Shown here one piece after another: positions 1 to 26,500 of a stretch of 64,000 nucleotides of DNA. The notes under the pieces were generated by a model. It saw only the letters and a program-made list of their open reading frames with translations. It made no database searches and was not told where the DNA came from. Position numbers and translations under genes: made by a program. The number at the start of each line of letters is the position of its first letter. Positions within the stretch are counted from its first letter, which is position 1. This DNA is from Chlorokybus atmophyticus (taxonomy: Eukaryota > Plantae > Mesostigma and Chlorokybus algae): the NCBI GenBank assembly GCA_009103225.1, contig RHPI01002090.1, forward strand, positions 954,414 through 1,018,413, given 5' to 3'.

Positions 1-370
1 TAACAAAGATAATAACATCACTGTACCATCTTTGTTTCAGGTAGATATGTGATCAGATCCATGCTCACACTTTCCCACTGATAGTTGGGAACAGCTAAGG
101 GCTTCAGCAACCCTGCTAGCTTCTTGCGAGGCTTTGTCTCCCAGACAAGTGTCACAACATGCGACATACTTTGATGCATCAGCACACAAGCTTGGCCACC
201 AATACAGTCTCTACAATTGCTTGATGGTCTTTGTCATTCCCATGTGCCCACTGTACACGGAATTGTGTGCCTCAAACAGACACGCTAGCCTCAAGCCGAG
301 TGCATCTGGCACTATTACCTTGCCCTCACGATACCATAGGCCCTTGTGACAAGTGATCATGTCGTCTGCT
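1..370 (-). pseudogene. Gypsy integrase N-terminal HHCC zinc-binding domain and start of catalytic core (disrupted)
   Basis: Hand translation: GLWYREGKVIVPD..LFEAHNSVYSGHMGMTKT..*RLYWWPSL..YVACCDTC..LLKPLAVPNYQWESVSMDLITYLP. Confidence 0.85.
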
Positions 371-374
371 TGCT

Positions 375-2116
375 TTATAATTTAATAAACCATGTGTCAA
401 GTGCATAAGCATCAGGCAAACGCTGTATGATGTCCTTCACAACGGCCATTGGGTCCTCCCCACTTGGCTCGTGAGCTGCCAACGGTGCTTCACAGTCTGC
501 TCTCTCGAGCGCAGTTAGCATCTCACTGGTCTCTGTTGCCACTGCTGTCTCACTAGCAGCTGGCTCATGCTCATGTGGCAACTCAGAAATACTGGCATTA
601 CTTGCTTGTGCCCATCCTTGGCTTCGTGCACGTGCACGTTTTGTCACTACCAATAGCAGCGGCGAACGGCTCAACGGTTCTGCCACATTCACTCTCCCCG
701 ATCTGTAAACCCAGGTGAAGTTGAATCTCGACAAGTACTCAGCCCACCTTGCTTGTCTTCTTGACAAGGTTGGTTGGGTCTGAAAGAAAACAAGGGGGTT
801 GTGGTCCGTGATCACACAAAACCCGCCTTCTACCCCCTTTAGATAGCAACGACACTCCTGTAGCGCATGGACTACCCCCAACAGCTCTTGCTCAATTATT
901 GTACGGTTTCTCTCAGCTGGAGAGAACTTCTTGCTAACATAAGCAAGGGGGTGCCCACTCTGGACCAACACAGCACCACTGCCCTCAACAGATGCATCAC
1001 ACATCACCTTAAAGCGCTTGGTGAAGTCCGGCCGCTCAAGACAGGCGCTGTCACCAAAGCCTCTTTAATGGAATCAAAAGGTTCTTGCTGCCTCTGTGAC
1101 CACCTCCACACCACCTTGTCATGCAACAGATTAGTGAGAGGGGCAACACGGGACGAATAATCCAAGATATACTTGCGGAAGTAGTTGCTCAATCTCAAGA
1201 ATGCGCGCAGCTTATGCACATTTGGAGGGCTCGGCCAATCCTTGACCTTGGCAACCTTCTATGGGCCAGGGCGCACGCCCTCTTTGCTTGCAATGTGGCC
1301 GTGGAACTTTAGTTTCTTCATGCCAAACTCGCACTTGGGCATGTAAGCACAAAAACGTTGCCCACGCAAGGTTCCCAACACCTCGCGCACATGTGCGACA
1401 TGCAAGTCATTCTTGCTGAGCACAAGTATATCATCACGATATACAAGCACTGTCTTCCTCATTAGCTTGTGAAACACACGGTTCATCATAGCTTGAAAGG
1501 TGGCGGGCGCATTCGTCAGTCCAAAAGGGAGCACCTTGTACTGTAAGTGGCCCACATGCGTTCTGAACGCTGTCTTAGGCACATTATCCGGAGTGATACG
1601 TATCTGGTGGTACCCACTAATCAGATCCAAGGAATTGAACATTAAGGCACCGCTCAATTGGTCAAGCAAATCATCTATCCTTGGCAACAGATACCTGTTC
1701 TTGATGGTCAACTTGTTCAAGGCCGTGTAGTCTACGCACATGCGTAGCCTGCCGCCCTTCTTATGTACAAATGGGTGCTCCAAAGGGAGAGCTACTTGGC
1801 TCAATCATCCCTTCCCAAGCAAGGCCTTGATCTGCCCCTCCATGTCCACATACTCAACTGGACTCTGCCTATATACAGGTCTGAACGGAGGCTGTGCATC
1901 CGAATCTTAAGGAATCGTATGCTAGACGTCCCTCTCAGGTGGCAATGCAGGCAGTTCAGCTTGAAACATATCAGACAATTCAGACAACAGACCTTGAAGG
2001 GCCGTGTCTGGTGGGTTGCCATCGGTCTCACCAATAAAAGCGGAAGTGCTGTTGCTGTTGACTGGGCGGACGAGCATTAGAAGGGGTTCACCTGCGTGGC
2101 ACTCAACAAAGAGCAT
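375..2116 (-). pseudogene. Gypsy reverse transcriptase + RNase H (frameshifted)
   Basis: ORFs 1922-2116, 1259-1804, 1004-1219 and 375-1007 carry consecutive RT/RH motifs in different frames; YxDD motif reads YRDD. Confidence 0.93.
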
Positions 2117-2900
2117 AAGATATATGTACCAATTGCGTCATCAACACAGTCAGCAGTGGGCACTACATCATGCCCATCAGCTTGCAAGGTCACACGACCT
2201 CGCCCTTTGCGCACACTGCAAAGCCTTATGTCTGCATCCGTACGCAAGCCACATGCTTGCTCCCAATGGCTGCCAACAATGACAGCCACGCCTGGCACCT
2301 CTACTGGGATGACCAAGAACTTGAGCTGAGCATGATAGCCTTGCACACGCACAGACAAGCGCACAACTCCCCGCACGGGGCTCTCATGCTTGTTCAGGGC
2401 AACAACCATGTCATCACACTTGCCGACACGAATGCCCAAGCGCCGCACAAGAGACTCACTCACGAAGTTCTCAGGTGTGCCTGTGTTTATCATTAAGATG
2501 CACGGCACATGTGCGACAGACGCCTTAAACAGCCAAGTCAAGTCTAGAGTACTTACCGGATGGAGGGCAGGAGGGTCATACATCACATACACGGACTTCT
2601 TACCCAGCTCGACTTCACCGAGAACCTGCACACCTTTAACAAGGTGAGTCCATGGCCCCGCATACTTGGGCACCACGATGCATGCACTTGTGTCATGCAC
2701 GCTCTTGCATGCTACATAAAGCTTGAGCATGTTGCACAACTGGTAGACAGGCGCGTTGAGCAAAACACATTTGCCCGCACAATTGTGCTGCATATGTGAG
2801 CATCCCCATGTACACCCAACTCATTCTCCCACACAGCAACATTGCATGGTTGGGGAAGGCGTGACATCAAGTCACTAGAAGCACATTGCTTATCAATGTC
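2077..2900 (-). pseudogene. Gypsy aspartic protease (catalytic D->N) preceded by a degenerate N6-adenine-methyltransferase-like segment
   Basis: ORF 2077-2793: HNCAGKCVLLNAPVYQL..MLKLYVACK..TSACIVVPKYAGPW then LMINTG..NFVSESLVRRLG..VILGSHW-like. Protease is clear; the MTase call rests on motif resemblance only. Confidence 0.6.
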
Positions 2901-3308
2901 CACAGAGCAGCTAGCCATATGCAATCCCTACTGTATACATGGCTTCTTGCTCTTTTCATGTCCCTCATACATGAGAGCATGGCCCCGAGCAGTTTCAGCC
3001 TGAGCCTCTTTAAGCTGAACTTTGCGGCTGCGTTTGCGCTCTTGGTGGTCCTGTCGAGCTGCATCAGCTGATGCACCAACATGTCCCTCACATGGGATCG
3101 CTTGGTCAACGTTGTCACCCGACCGTTGCCATTGAACTATGTTGGCCTCGTGTTGTTGCTGTAACTCTGTTACCTGCTCACACAACGCGGCAACAAAAGT
3201 GGTCAACTGTCGGGTGGTCTTGGCAACATCATTGCCCCAGGATGCCTCCTCTTGTGCTGTATGCTGTTGCTCAGCCATCCCCACATAAGGTTGGAGCCAA
3301 CACCACAC
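2867..3308 (-). pseudogene. Probable gag remnant of the gypsy element
   Basis: Coiled-coil-like ORF fragments (LCEQVTELQQQHE) directly upstream of the pol region; no strong motif. Confidence 0.45.
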
Positions 3309-4727: not shown

Positions 4728-6560
4728 AATACTAGCGCAACATGCAGCACTCGCCACATGCCATTTCATGCTTACACTCTACATCAGCAATTTCACCACT
4801 GGGCTGCCTACCTCTACCTAACACGCCAAGCCCCTACCCTATTGGTAAAAGCAACATGCATGATCCACAGCCATTACCTGCACCACGGCTGTACACGTGC
4901 TCGCACGGAGTTGGCGACAGAGCCGATGCATGCTGCGGGCCAATGCTAACGCTTTGCGCGTAACCCTAACAATGGTTGCCAGCGGCAGTGTAGACAACAG
5001 GGGAAGAGGCGGCAAGAGAGATAGGGAGGGAGGGGGAGTCCACGTCAGGCGATTGGTGCTGGTGGCTGCTGCTGCAAAAAGGCCGCTAACCAAGGTGCAT
5101 GCAGGTGCCTGCAATTGCCATGCATGCATGCATGCATGCATGTCAAACAGGGGGGCAGTAGAGATAGGGTGAGAAGTTGTCACAAATTGGGATACATTGT
5201 GATAGACCTCACTCATGGTAGTGTCTTTTACTACCATAGCCTAGTGGTCGGGCCCCAATTGTTACAATGGTTACGGAGCTTAACGTCCCAGGTTCAATTC
5301 CCGTAGGGGACTGAGGCAGATCCGTGGCAAAATAAAACATTTGGGGCGGCTTGCCCTAGGCTGCGCGCGGGACACGACCTGCGCGCTGAGCCAATTCAAC
5401 CTAAGGCCGCGTGAGCGGTCGCGCTGCGATGGTAGGTCGCGCGGTGAGGATGGCCGTTCGATCGGTCAGGACCATTCGTGGGCCGGATCCAACAAGCCGC
5501 GGGCAGACCGATCGTGGCACGGTCGTGAACACGGCGACGTGGGCTAGTGCCTCATTGGATTACGAGGAACTCATGGGTTAAATTGGGGAGGAATGTCACA
5601 AATTGGGATAAATTGTGACAGACCTCACTCGTGGTAGTGTCTTTTACTACCATAGCCTAGTGGTCGGGCCCCAATTGTTGCAGAAGTAGTCAGTAGGTAG
5701 CATGTAGGCGCCGTCTGCCCCGGTGGTCAATTGGTGAGTGTTTGTAGTGTTAGTAACATTGCATGTGCACATAAGTTTGCATGTATGAAATCCCTCTTGC
5801 ATCTTTTGTACACACATCGCCATTGTGTACAGGTAACTACGCATGCATGTTGACTAACGGGGCAAGGGCTTAGCGAAGGTAGCTTCCTAGTATGTATAGG
5901 TAGCCCGGTGGTGTAACAAGTTGTTGTTTGCTGGCGTGTGCGAGTGCGCTTGTGTTTGCATGTGTCATGCATGTGCACAATGCAATGGGGTCACATGCAT
6001 AGCATTGCATATACGCTACACAATACTAGCACTGTACACACAATACTAGCACTTTTATGCTTACGCTGTATATCAGGAGCTCACCGCTGGGCTGCCTACT
6101 CTATCAAACACGCTAACTTAGCCCCTACCCCGATAGTCAGAGCTACATGCATCTGCAATGCTTTGCAGGTGCTTCCTTTGCTGCTTGCCGCTACCCCTTC
6201 CCTGAACCCCCACCCTCCCCAAGTCTATAGCTAGTGCACTTAGCTATAGCTTAGTGGGGGCCGCCACCCCGTTGTCTTGCCCTTGCTTGTGAAGTGTTAT
6301 CAAGCTTGGATGTGTTGTGTGCTTGCTGCCTTCACTAATTGGCCCCAATCCATCTGTTGTGTACTATGCATGATGTCCACCCATCACATGCTGCGCGGCT
6401 ATGGTTAGCGACCAGCCTTCTTCATTGCAGTGACAGCAGGAGCAGTCTCAATGGACCCCCCCGCCCTCCTCCACCACTCCTCCTCCGCCTACTCCTGCAG
6501 TAGGGGCCCCGCTCGCTCGCTACCACGCACTGTCGACGCTACTGTTATGCCAATCAGGGT
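4728..6560. repeat. Cluster of diverged copies of a ~400-bp dispersed repeat: forward partial ~4730-4870, reverse ~4950-5915 (split by the TRIM), forward ~6020-6560
   Basis: Shared blocks with the 11.5/12.3-kb copies: (c)cggg/ctggg..ctacc..acacgct..ccctacc(a)ccccg.tag..catgca; ggttagcg.cc.ag; caatggac.ccccc..cctcctcc; gttagggtt. Confidence 0.65.
5178..5682 (+). mobile_element. Complete TRIM (terminal-repeat retrotransposon in miniature)
   Basis: 89-bp LTRs 5178-5266 and 5594-5682 (TG...CA, 4 substitutions); 5-bp TSD GAAGT at 5173-5177 and 5683-5687; PBS TGGTTACGGAGC at 5268-5279; polypurine tract GGGGAGGAA at 5585-5593; 327-bp non-coding interior. Confidence 0.95.
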
Positions 6561-11510: not shown

Positions 11511-12704
11511 ATGTACATACAATGCGAAACGGCAATGCACATGCATAGTGGCATGCACAGTCAGTAGCATGAGGAGTGACATAGCGCATACCAACAGCAC
11601 CATTGTCAGGTTGACCACCGGGTTCATTCGCTACCTCACACGCTGCACTAACCCTACCACCCCGTTAGCCATGTAAGCATGCATATGCATATGCGTTCAC
11701 CTACACAACGGCCGTTGGTTAGTGGCTCAGGCTTAGCCGAGGCAGCAGCAGCAGCAGCAGCAGACCCAATGGACTCCCCCTCCTCCTCCGCCCACATCAC
11801 CACCTCTACCAACAACTGCGTCATACACCCTACTGTAGCTGCGTTGTTAGGGTTTGCGCCCATTAGCGCGCAGCATGCATACGCACAACACGTCGCACTC
11901 CCTTTTCGCAGTGCTGTGTACTCCACCGTGATGACACGGGCAGACCTCGCTGCTCCCCATGTACTGCAATTCGCCATAGTAGTCCTGCTTGGGTGCTCCT
12001 TGTACGAATTGAGGGCGAGGTTGTCGATGCCGGCCGAGCACTGCATGCATGCATGGCCAACGGGGTGCTGCCTCGCTATGCTATTTGCATGTCTATGCAT
12101 GCATGGTGCCCCCGGTCAAGCACCCTATTCACACCCAACAGTCACAAGCAATCAGCAACCAACCTATGGGGACCTATGGGGACTAAGGGGACCTCCCTAC
12201 GCCTCAACATAGGGTAGCTAGGCGCACACCTCAACCAGCGTGGGCTGACCTAGCTTGCCTCTGGCTCGGGACGGCCTGAAGGACTGCCAGGGCGTAGAAT
12301 GTACATACAATGCGAAACGGCACTGCACATGCATAGTGGCATGCACAGTCAGTAGCATGCAGAGTGACATAGCGCATACCAACAACACCATTGTCAGGTT
12401 GACCACCGGGTTCATTCACTACCTCACACGCTGCACTAACCCTACCACCCCGTTAGCCATGTAAGCATGCACATGCATATGCGTTCACCTGCACAACGGC
12501 CGTTGGTTAGCGGCCCAGTCTTAGCCAAGGCAGCAACAGCAGCAGCAGACCCAACGGACTCCCCCTCCTCCTCCGCCCACATCACCACCTCCACCAACAA
12601 CTGAGTCATACACCCTGCTGTGGCTGCGTCGTTAGGGTTTGCGCCCATTAGCGCGCAGCATGCATACGCACAGCACGTCGCACTCCCTTTTCGCAATGCT
12701 GTGT
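11511..12704. repeat. Partial tandem duplication, 788-bp period: copies 11511-11919 and 12299-12704
   Basis: By-eye alignment: about 20 substitutions and one 3-bp (GCA) indel over ~406 bp; same repeat family as at 4.7-6.6 kb. Confidence 0.92.
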
Positions 12705-23536: not shown

Positions 23537-26500
23537 TCATATGACAATTTCCCGCGGCTGCGGCTTGCGTATGTGTCGCATGGATGATCCAGCTTCTGTT
23601 GGTTTGAAAGGTGCAAGCACGCCGTACGGTTTGGGAATGCCCAGGTCCACCGACATGTACGCATTGGGCCTGGTCTCCGCGGCAGTCTTCCTTGCGGGGG
23701 CCATCCCGCTCTCTATCAGTGCCTTGCGCGACGCCACCACCGCCTGTGCTGCCGCCGCCATGGCCGCCGCCCTCTGCACACAGTTGCTTTGTAAGTCACA
23801 CGCACAACAACCCAGTACAAAATTGGTATGTCACGCATGCGCAGACTCGCTGCACGCAGGTGCAGTCACTCACCTGCATGCGATCCCACTCGCTGTCTGC
23901 ATCGTCGGTAGGGGCCTGGCCGTCGGCGAGGCGGACGCCGGCGTCCTCGACCTGCGCCTCAAGGGCGGCCTTGTCTTGCGCGAGCTTCATGGCCATGGCC
24001 TGGTACATGGAGAGCTCCGCAACCGTCGCCATCATGCGCTGCGTGACGGTGTAAATCTTGCTCTGGTAGCTCTTTACCGTCGCCGCCAGCTCCAGCGTAT
24101 CCTCCCGCCCTTCTGCCGCTTGCTCCTGCAGCCTCTCCGCCAACGCGGTGACCTCCTCCAGAATCAACTCCTTTTCCAACAGCTGCTCCTTCTGTAGGGG
24201 TACACACGAGTACAAACACCAACACGTGTTAGCACACACTCTATGGATATGGATCGCTTGTACTGTGTCTGCATGGCACCTTGTCATTCAGTCTCTCTTC
24301 CAAGGAATTGATTTTGGCAAGCAGTTCATCGCGTTCCGGTATCTTGCCCTCCAGATTGCGCCACTTGGGCCGCGTGGCAGGGTCCTCCAGCGTGTTCGAC
24401 ACGTCCTCAACCTGTGATAAACAAGCAGTTGCAACGCTCAACCAGGGGCAGTTGTTGCTGTTGCTGCTCATCAATAGCAACACAGCCATCACAACACAAA
24501 CAAATACTTACGCGACTCGCGGTTGCTTCAAGCTCCGAGCGCAAATTGCCTATTGACTTTTGGCATTCGGGGATGATCGGCTGCTGGGCTTGCGCGTTGA
24601 TGATGGAGCGCTTGAGATGCTCTATCTGTATGCGGAGGAGGCGGGACTGGTCGTCAATGTGCGCGAGGGCGACGGTGCCATTGTGGAGGGCGTCATCGTT
24701 GGCGTGGGCGCGCTGGTAGAGTATGCAGAGCTCATCGTGACGGTCGATGAGGGTGAGGCCCGTGAGGTTCCTACGCTCGGCAGCGCCCTCGTACTCCTTC
24801 CTGAGGGCGACCATGCTGCGCTCGGCGACGTCCACGCCGCCGTTGAGCTTGTCGATCTCTGCAAGCTGCTCCTCGACGGCGGTGCGGCGATCACGAATGA
24901 CAATGGCGCTGGCGTTGACCTCGAGGCGAAGGTGGTCCCTGTCGGCAACGAGGCCGCCGGCTTCCAGACGCACCTTGGCGAGCTGCTTCTCTTTGGCGGC
25001 GAGCTCCTCGCGCAGGATGTCGGCCTCGCTGGACACGGCCTTGAGCTTCTCCTTCATCTCCGACAGCGTCTGACTGCTCTGCTGGATGAGGTTAACGAAG
25101 TTGGAGCGCTGGTTCTTGACGAGGTTGTAGAGCGCGTGCGTGGCCGCCAGCCGCGAGGCCGTCTCCCGCTTCTTCTTCTTCAGGTCCAGGATCACCAGGT
25201 CCTTCACCCGCACGGCCTCCAGCGCCTCCCTCTGCTGCGCCGCCTTGTGTCCGGCCTCCCTCGCAGCCCGCAGCCTCGCCGAGTCCAGCTCGCTCACCCG
25301 TCTCCTCGCCGCCGCCTCCGCCCTCGCAAGGCTCACCACCTCCCTCTCCAGGTCCGCCACCGCCGTCGCCGACTTCCTCACCGCCTCGGCAGCCTCCTTC
25401 CCGAGGCCCTCCTCGCGCGCGAGGACCTGCCTCTGGGCGCCGGCCTCCACCCTGGCCTCCTCCAGGGAGGCCGCCTGGCGAGCGCGCTCGGCCTCGAGGG
25501 ATGCCAGCTGGGCAGACGCCTGCTCCTTCACGCTCGCAAGCATTGGCACGCTGCTTTGAAGCGCCTTGAACGCCGCGTCGGCACGCTTCAGCCGCTTCAG
25601 CGCCAGGTCCTTGTCCTTGATACGCCTCGCAAGCTCCTCCTTTGCCGCCCTCACCTCCACCGTCACCGACGACACCTGCGCCACCATGTGCACGCATGCT
25701 AGTGTTACCCGAGCGCACAGCGAGATGGTCTGGTTCCATACCCACGCAGTGCCACTCACCTGCATGTCTACGCTGACGCGGTCGGCCATGAGCTGATCGG
25801 CCTCGAGGCCAGCGGCGTCCAGGTCGCGGCGCACCTCATCTGCCGCGCGCTCTTTTGCCTCCGCCGCCGCACGCGACCGCTCCATCAGCGCTGCCAACTG
25901 ATACAACAATATAACATTTAGTGGCTGGACCGATCTCGTGTAGCAGCTGTACACGACAACTGCTCCCTCACCTTGCTGTGCTCATCGTTGATCTCTTTGA
26001 AGCGTGTGCCCTGTGCGCCGCCGTCAGCCTCCAGGTCCCGCAAACGCTCTAGCGCGCGAGCCTCTTGCAGCCGCAGCGTCCTCAGCCCCGTCGCCAGCAC
26101 CTCCACTTGCTTCGCCACCTGAACCAACAACCACAGTCAACAATAACGCCATGACCATTGATGATAATGATGGTGATGATGGTGGTGTACCTTGTCGGGG
26201 CCTTGGGCGAGGCGGGTAAGGGCGCTCTCGGCGGCGAGCTTCTCGGAGATGAGGTTCTCGGTCTCGCGCTTGACCTCAGCGGCGCGCTCCTCGAGGGCTT
26301 CGAGCTCCTTGCGCAGGGCGGAGGCGCGGGTGGCGTCCTCGGCCGCAGTCGCCCCCGCGTCCGACGCCTCCTTCCTCGCCGCCCTCACCTGCGGCACCAG
26401 CAACGCCGCCGACTCCCTCTCAGCCGCGTCCACCAGATCCATCGCCTACACACAGCACTCATTGGTGTGCACGCGCGCATGTGCACGTGTATGTATGTGC

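Follow-up and report, generated by a model that had tools for sequence, protein, structure and literature searches.

The minus strand of the 64,000-nt stretch analysed here (the window; contig RHPI01002090.1 of the streptophyte alga Chlorokybus atmophyticus) very probably carries, at positions ~30-3308, a dead copy of a chromovirus-type Ty3/gypsy LTR retrotransposon. This copy would belong to a lineage whose Pol starts in a Dam-like adenine-N6 methyltransferase domain ('DAM-LTR'). Read on the minus strand, the Pfam matches follow one another in the order aspartic protease, RVT_1, RNase H and integrase H2C2, which is the pol order of Ty3/gypsy-type elements, and tblastn comparison with intact pol ORFs concurs. 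The parts that could be delimited, with the evidence for each, are as follows (L021 is one of the metagenomic relatives described below):

2928..3308, minus strand: upstream ORF of 126 aa at the gag position, ending in TAG (2930-2928), without gag, capsid or zinc-knuckle match
2794..2927, minus strand: 43 codons, in a different frame, between the in-frame stop and the domain remnant; the expected place of the N-terminal half of the domain (motif I, F-x-L-D-A-C-C-N)
2569..2805, minus strand: Dam-like domain remnant (PF05869/PCIF1-clade); phmmer E 4.9e-9, relatives-only HMM 66.6 bits, alignment A1
2263..2523, minus strand: retroviral-type aspartic protease with active site N-T-G; PF13650/PF13975/PF08284 at residues 91-177 of ORF 2793..2077, alignment with relatives
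1034..2029, minus strand: reverse transcriptase (Y-R-D-D) running into the RNase H linker, four stops in frame; PF00078 E 1e-28, tblastn with L021 pol (47% identity)
636..1043, minus strand: RNase H, in a frame that differs from that of the reverse transcriptase; PF17917 E 2e-26, tblastn frames
30..357, minus strand: integrase H2C2 zinc-binding region in two frames, with a stop at 213-211; PF17921, tblastn

The Dam-like remnant and the protease are carried by one open frame of 238 aa, i.e. ORF 2793..2077 (-), and the remaining Pfam matches fall in ORFs 1804..1259 (RVT_1), 1007..375 (RNase H) and 360..37 (H2C2 integrase), all on the minus strand. Further upstream, the TAG that closes the 126-aa ORF (3308-2928) is followed by 43 codons of the same frame and then by a frame switch. 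The element runs off the window, which truncates it at the 3' side: its 3' end lies beyond the window start, and the C-terminus of the integrase, where a chromodomain would follow, is off-window. No LTR pair for the gypsy remnant was found in the window, and no second copy of the element is present in these 64 kb. Upstream of the DAM-pol region, in ORF 2928-3308, gag was recognised neither by Pfam nor by comparison with the gag ORFs of six relatives (L013, L021, L009 and L008, used in tblastn, among them); as the intact relatives have gag, that of the window copy was likely lost.

Other repeats and one exon were recorded in the window. Just upstream of the gypsy remnant, in the minus-strand sense, two 89-nt direct repeats (5178-5266 and 5594-5682; 96% identical, TG...CA ends, 416 bp apart) make up a TRIM-like miniature LTR element (5178-5682). 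A unit of ~790 bp is present in two tandem copies, 95% identical, at 11511-12704. An open exon at 24407-25954 (-) encodes 515 aa with the central coiled-coil domain of the flagellar protein CFAP58, its best database relatives being 39-46% identical.

Homology and fold of the Dam-like segment

The original prediction placed a Dam-type adenine methyltransferase domain in the polyprotein of a gypsy element, on the basis of a motif NAPV (2757-2746), a hydrophobic strand TSACIVVP (2691-2668) and a Trp, here found in K-Y-A-G-P-W. Its coordinates are exact (ORF 2793..2077 contains M-Q-H-N-C-A-G-K-C-V-L-L-N-A-P-V-Y-Q-L). The motif does stand upstream of the protease and in the same frame, ~78 aa before the Pfam protease match, where ~90 aa had been given.

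As a query we used the 95-aa piece of the window at 2509-2793 (-). Against Pfam, at E values up to 10, it produced only a chance match to Toxin_28 and none to PF05869; against PDB, phmmer produced a single chance match (E 1.9), and the ESM Atlas and a word-indexed protein search gave no usable match. The phmmer search of 1.84 billion representative proteins, by contrast with these, returned 19 hits, the best with an E value of 4.9e-9 and ~42% identity. The proteins found in this way have in common a block of ~160 aa with the signatures F-x-L-D-A-C-C-N, S-F-L, W-L-N-P-P-F and H-Y-x-x-C-K, which continues with T-S-A-C-I-L-V-P-x-W-x-G-P-W and L-P-G-I-P-W-P-V-x-V-Y-Y-D-P-P; an aspartic protease and a reverse transcriptase come directly after it. 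In a profile built from the relatives only, with the window left out, positions 48-118 (of 162) matched the window frame at 66.6 bits (E 6e-22).

These comparisons show, at the level of sequence, that window positions 2569-2805 are homologous to the conserved ~160-aa Dam-like domain of the relatives. The assignment of the window piece to Dam is transitive, i.e. it passes through relatives at ~42% identity, as the piece itself misses PF05869. The feature that defines a DAM-LTR, a Dam-homologous domain in the frame of the polyprotein, is therefore recognised here indirectly, through the profile of the relatives. The proposed profile comparison with PF05869 had a divided outcome, the window piece giving no match and relatives scoring above threshold.

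Might the segment be the C-terminus of gag, a zinc knuckle or a linker, in which NAPV, a strand ending in Pro and a Trp had come together by chance? The window piece taken alone has no Pfam or PDB match, and H-N-C-A-G-K-C superficially resembles a CCHC knuckle. We nevertheless regard this explanation as extremely improbable, since the domain to which the piece has significant homology scores as Dam in the relatives, whose true zinc knuckles are found upstream, in a gag ORF of their own. Ordinary gag C-terminus or zinc-knuckle sequence in intact copies, named in advance as the finding that would speak against a methyltransferase, was thus not what the relatives have at this place. H-N-C-A-G-K-C was also considered as the remnant of a zinc knuckle and rejected: it aligns with H-N-C-A-G-K-H of relative P0007, directly before W-I-N-P-P-F in the Dam domain.

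The domain of the relatives is more readily recognised than the segment in the window. Seven of ten relatives (P0001, P0008, P0009, P0011, P0014, P0016 and P0018) exceed the gathering threshold of PF05869 (Dam), with 28.3-36.9 bits against a cutoff of 28.1, and in some of the relatives faint matches to PF12237 (PCIF1) accompany it. In pol ORFs from metagenomes the PF05869 scores are 45.2 bits (L022) and 29.6-31 bits (L009 and L008).

An AlphaFold2 model of P0007, made with alignment A1, has a mean pLDDT of 83. When this model was submitted to Foldseek, E values of 0.001 or lower were obtained only for PCIF1/CAPAM (best E 6e-5), entries of which took the top six ranks. In VIA-align, PCIF1 (Z 11.6, rmsd 3.0 Å, 137 residues) was followed by the adenine-N6 RNA methyltransferases KsgA/DIMT1/Erm/METTL5 (Z ~9), T4 Dam (8.8), E. 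coli Dam (8.7) and M.TaqI (8.2). A sequence-profile search of PDB found DDI1-type proteases only and no methyltransferase, so the methyltransferase assignment rests on Pfam and on the fold. The domain of the relatives is predicted to adopt an adenine-N6 methyltransferase fold, nearest to that of PCIF1. With relatives bearing W-L-N-P-P-F passing PF05869 and the modelled relative folded as a methyltransferase, the reading of the segment as a Dam-type domain in a gypsy polyprotein is upheld. The methyltransferase assignment also agrees with the placing of the DIRS1 MT domain in the PCIF1 clade by Iyer et al. 2015.

Intact relatives and decay of the window copy

Scanning metagenome contigs with alignment A2 yielded 30 loci. 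Open pol frames of 1365-1440 aa are present in L013, L021, L009 and L017 and have the order DAM - PR - RT - RNase H - integrase (H2C2, rve, SH3) - chromodomain (PF00385). The first of these domains is matched by PF05869 at E <= 0.001 in L021, L009 and L017, and in L013 it is recognised by the relatives-only profile (172.5 bits), not by Pfam. The reverse transcriptases of these elements, all of which have a chromodomain, are the closest relatives of that in the window (50-59% identity).

Just upstream of pol, the intact relatives have gag ORFs with CX2CX4HX4C knuckles. In L013 (899-6991), a complete DAM-chromovirus of the NAPF type, the gag stop is directly in frame with pol, as in readthrough-type expression, and in L021 the two ORFs overlap without sharing a frame. 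LTR segments are visible on the contigs of L013, L009 and L017 and are 97-100% identical; in L013, 109 nt are 100% identical at both ends. Because gag, DAM and protease stand in this order in intact relatives, the location between gag and protease, which was claimed from the decayed copy, is the true architecture of the family, and these elements are chromoviruses. In the window copy itself, a remnant of the methyltransferase domain is there; the N-terminal SAM-binding half is undetectable, and gag is unrecognisable.

Locus L022:532-5394 (contig Ga0114972_10014300) is a Ty1/copia-type element with one ORF of 1621 aa, in which Retrotran_gag_2, Dam (PF05869, 45 bits, NPPF), a copia protease barrel, gag_pre-integrase, rve and RVT_2 were recognised. 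Its Dam domain again lies between gag and protease, and the two ends of the contig share a stretch of 123 nt at 100% identity. Copia elements are nowhere mentioned in the preprint on DAM-LTRs (bioRxiv 10.64898/2026.05.21.726589).

DIRS elements are the classical carriers of the domain, and the window copy lacks gag and has been rearranged, with changes of frame; both facts would suit an origin of the Dam-like piece from a DIRS-type element, or from another foreign insertion, nested in the gypsy element. Such an origin is very unlikely, given that the remnant and the protease share one unbroken open frame and that the same kind of DAM-PR junction (...V-x-V-Y-Y-D-P-P, then the protease) is seen in intact relatives. 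In addition, the window element has an H2C2 integrase and no tyrosine recombinase, and so does not have the make-up of the DIRS type. We therefore treat the remnant as a native part of the Pol of a DAM chromovirus.

What remains of the domain in the window is its central ~70 residues and the last strand. Strand 4, motif IV (NAPV), the next helix, strand 5 (TSACIVVP) and GPW are kept, as are the following helix and strand and the terminal V-Y-V-M-Y-D-P-P. A six-frame HMM search of the window gave no match in any frame to profile positions 1-47, the presumed SAM-binding region with the N-terminal helix and the F-x-L-D-A-C-C-N strand, and likewise none to positions 119-162. Alignment A1 revealed an internal deletion of ~20 residues in the C-terminal sheet, which comprises the L-F-x-A-P...L-P-G-I-P-W part.

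Within 2794..2927, V-D-I-D-K-Q-C was set by MAFFT under F-D-L-D-A-C-C and was examined as a candidate for motif I; its HMM score of -0.5 gives no support, and the candidate was rejected. Around the break at 2794-2830, two peptides of different frames, E-N-E-L-G-V-H (frame 2) and H-N-C-A-G-K-C (frame 1), fell in one set of columns of the family alignment, and the distance from the S-F-L position to H-N-C is longer by ~26-29 bases. A small tandem duplication could have caused the frameshift here.

Damage extends over the rest of pol, in which there are at least five in-frame stops (1924-1922, 1909-1907, 1807-1805, 1261-1259 and 213-211) and, by tblastn against intact pol ORFs, at least four frame changes; one break lies between 2794-2927 and 2793. 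The substitutions pointed out in the protease and the reverse transcriptase are real: the active site of the former is N-T-G where the relatives have D-S/T-G, and the latter has Y-R-D-D against Y-L/M-D-D. An active Dam-type enzyme has a complete Dam fold, an uninterrupted frame and (D/N)-P-P-(Y/F/W) in motif IV; the window copy has an incomplete fold, an interrupted frame and N-A-P-V. Since its SAM-binding half is undetectable, ~20 residues have been deleted, motif IV has Val for its aromatic residue, and stops and frameshifts occur throughout pol, the window copy is a dead pseudogene that can neither produce the enzyme nor perform its function.

Motif IV, selection and possible function

Motif IV is NPPF/NPPY in 18 distinct sequences among the relatives and NAPF/NAPL in about as many; NVPF, NVPT, HPPV, DPPS, DPPE and YVST were also found. 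An intact NPPF/Y, which was to be looked for in better preserved copies, is present in some of them, L009 included. NAPF is the form of two elements whose gag and pol are complete and whose D-S-G and Y-x-D-D are intact, namely L013 and L021, and HPPV is present in the intact chromovirus pol of L017 (715-4809), which forms a pair with L019, likewise HPPV. In a quick tree of poor resolution the NAP forms do not cluster, and the window has a weak affinity for lineages bearing non-canonical motifs.

As NAPF is common among the relatives, including intact young elements, the Ala of the window NAPV was probably inherited and is not a product of decay in this copy, in which case F->V alone would be copy-specific. 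The original prediction was right to see a decayed copy, in view of the stops and frame changes; its derivation of NAPV from NPPF by decay fits the F->V change and probably does not apply to the Ala.

Pairwise dN/dS values of the domain (Nei-Gojobori), which come from few substitutions, are 0.28 for L017/L019 and 0.17-0.42 for pairs in the NAPF group of L001. The exception is the almost undiverged pair L010/L014, with seven differences in all and a ratio of 1.8. The downstream protease region has similar values (0.27-0.32). Judged by these ratios, few as the underlying substitutions are, the Dam-like domain is maintained by purifying selection even without the canonical motif, and the L017/L019 pair suggests that it is kept without the catalytic Asn and the aromatic residue. 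NAPF domains may be catalytically active, or they may not. Amino-methyltransferase families include motif variants with one Pro, e.g. NLPY, and NAPF is therefore not necessarily inactive; NLPY/NIPY are found in KsgA/Erm, and the catalytic motif of PCIF1 is NPPF.

In intact relatives Pol begins with the domain, which comes after gag and either follows an in-frame stop or lies in an overlapping frame. The domain would be made as part of Gag-Pol, be packaged in the virus-like particle and be freed by the protease. According to the model of the preprint, it would then adenine-methylate the products of reverse transcription, and new insertions would carry 6mA and sit in permissive chromatin. Alternatively, binding of nucleic acid or of a cofactor without catalysis may be the function that is maintained in many lineages, which fits the occurrence of NAPF, HPPV, DPPS and DPPE in intact ORFs under purifying selection.

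It is possible, although we have more doubt than confidence in it, that DNA methylation is not what the domain does in practice. The domain would then be a PCIF1-clade module that acts on RNA, e.g. on the cap-adjacent adenosine of the element transcript, or that catalyses nothing and binds RNA, SAM or the Pol II machinery, and the window copy would be a relic of it. Among the structural matches PCIF1/CAPAM is clearly ahead of the others, and weak PF12237 matches lie beside PF05869, yet Pfam puts the relatives in Dam and not in PCIF1, with significant scores. The MT domain of DIRS1 was assigned to the PCIF1 clade and considered probably inactive (Iyer et al. 2015, PMC4738411), and eukaryotic DAMs expressed in E. 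coli gave no 6mA; on the other hand, the same preprint places the domains with prokaryotic DAMs in its phylogeny and reports more 6mA on DAM-LTR insertions (bioRxiv 10.64898/2026.05.21.726589). Many relatives, some with intact pol ORFs, have a non-canonical motif IV (NAPF, NVPF, HPPV, DPPS, DPPE or YVST), a point in favour of such a module that is weakened by the one-Pro amino-methyltransferases of the NLPY kind. The dN/dS of the domain (0.17-0.42), like that of the rest of pol, points the same way, but the values come from few substitutions.

For the host lineage we propose, tentatively and with more doubt than confidence, that the earliest-branching streptophytes formerly had active DAM chromoviruses, of which only relics are left; this would run counter to the absence reported for Streptophyta. 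In this proposal the domain would be kept by purifying selection across the wider family even where NPPF is replaced (NAPF, HPPV, DPPS/E), often in a non-catalytic role (nucleic-acid or SAM binding, PCIF1 mimicry).

Comparison with known systems

DAM domains, earlier known only in DIRS elements, were recently reported also in Ty3/gypsy LTR elements, the 'DAM-LTRs', including a DAM-chromovirus-like clade of Chlorophyta (bioRxiv 10.64898/2026.05.21.726589, preprint, May 2026). According to that preprint, Asn-Pro-Pro is almost universal in DAM-LTRs, and 6mA is higher on their insertions in ichthyosporeans and Euglena. Its authors state that Metazoa and Streptophyta have no DAM-LTRs; these elements are tied to hosts that keep the AMT1/6mA system, and the absence from Streptophyta is used as support. 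The underlying screen applied a Pfam HMM at E <= 1e-5 to ORFs and would miss the window copy, because this copy has no Pfam Dam match.

The family is thus already described, but not in streptophytes. As DAM-LTRs have been published, the window copy adds a member and not a kind, and it is notable only as a streptophyte relic. Such a relic means that the DAM-LTR family did reach this lineage, and it dates a loss, not an absence; it is also a place to test whether the decay of the elements followed the loss of 6mA by the host. The frequency of non-canonical catalytic motifs in intact, young elements bears on whether DAM domains methylate anything.

The window element resembles the DAM-LTRs of the preprint in its Ty3/gypsy-type pol (PR, RT, RNase H, H2C2 integrase) with a PF05869-type domain, in its relatives with chromodomain and LTRs, and in its host from the green lineage. 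It differs from them in that this host is a streptophyte, a group from which they were reported absent, in that the copy is a pseudogene, and in that motif IV, which is NAPV in this copy and NAPF in its near relatives, departs from an almost universal Asn-Pro-Pro.

Phage and bacterial Dam (PF05869; T4 Dam 1q0s, E. coli Dam 2ore) belong to the Pfam family of the relatives and share with them the class I SAM-methyltransferase fold and the N-P-P-F/Y motif. However, the domain of eukaryotic transposable elements aligns to only a part of these enzymes (bioRxiv 10.64898/2026.05.21.726589), and the Z scores with the modelled relative are ~8.7-8.8. PCIF1/CAPAM (PDB 6irv-6is0), the best structural match of that model, has 16-21% identity and no sequence-level match in PDB, and acts in the cell as an RNA enzyme that also has a WW domain and a helical one.

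The MT domain of the DIRS1 group (Goodwin and Poulter; Iyer et al. 2015, PMC4738411) is likewise a Dam/PCIF1-clade domain with a putative function in the polyprotein of a retroelement. DIRS elements, however, have a tyrosine recombinase and neither a protease nor a DDE integrase, and their MT domain lies downstream of RNase H, whereas the domain in the window lies upstream of the protease in an element that bears an integrase.
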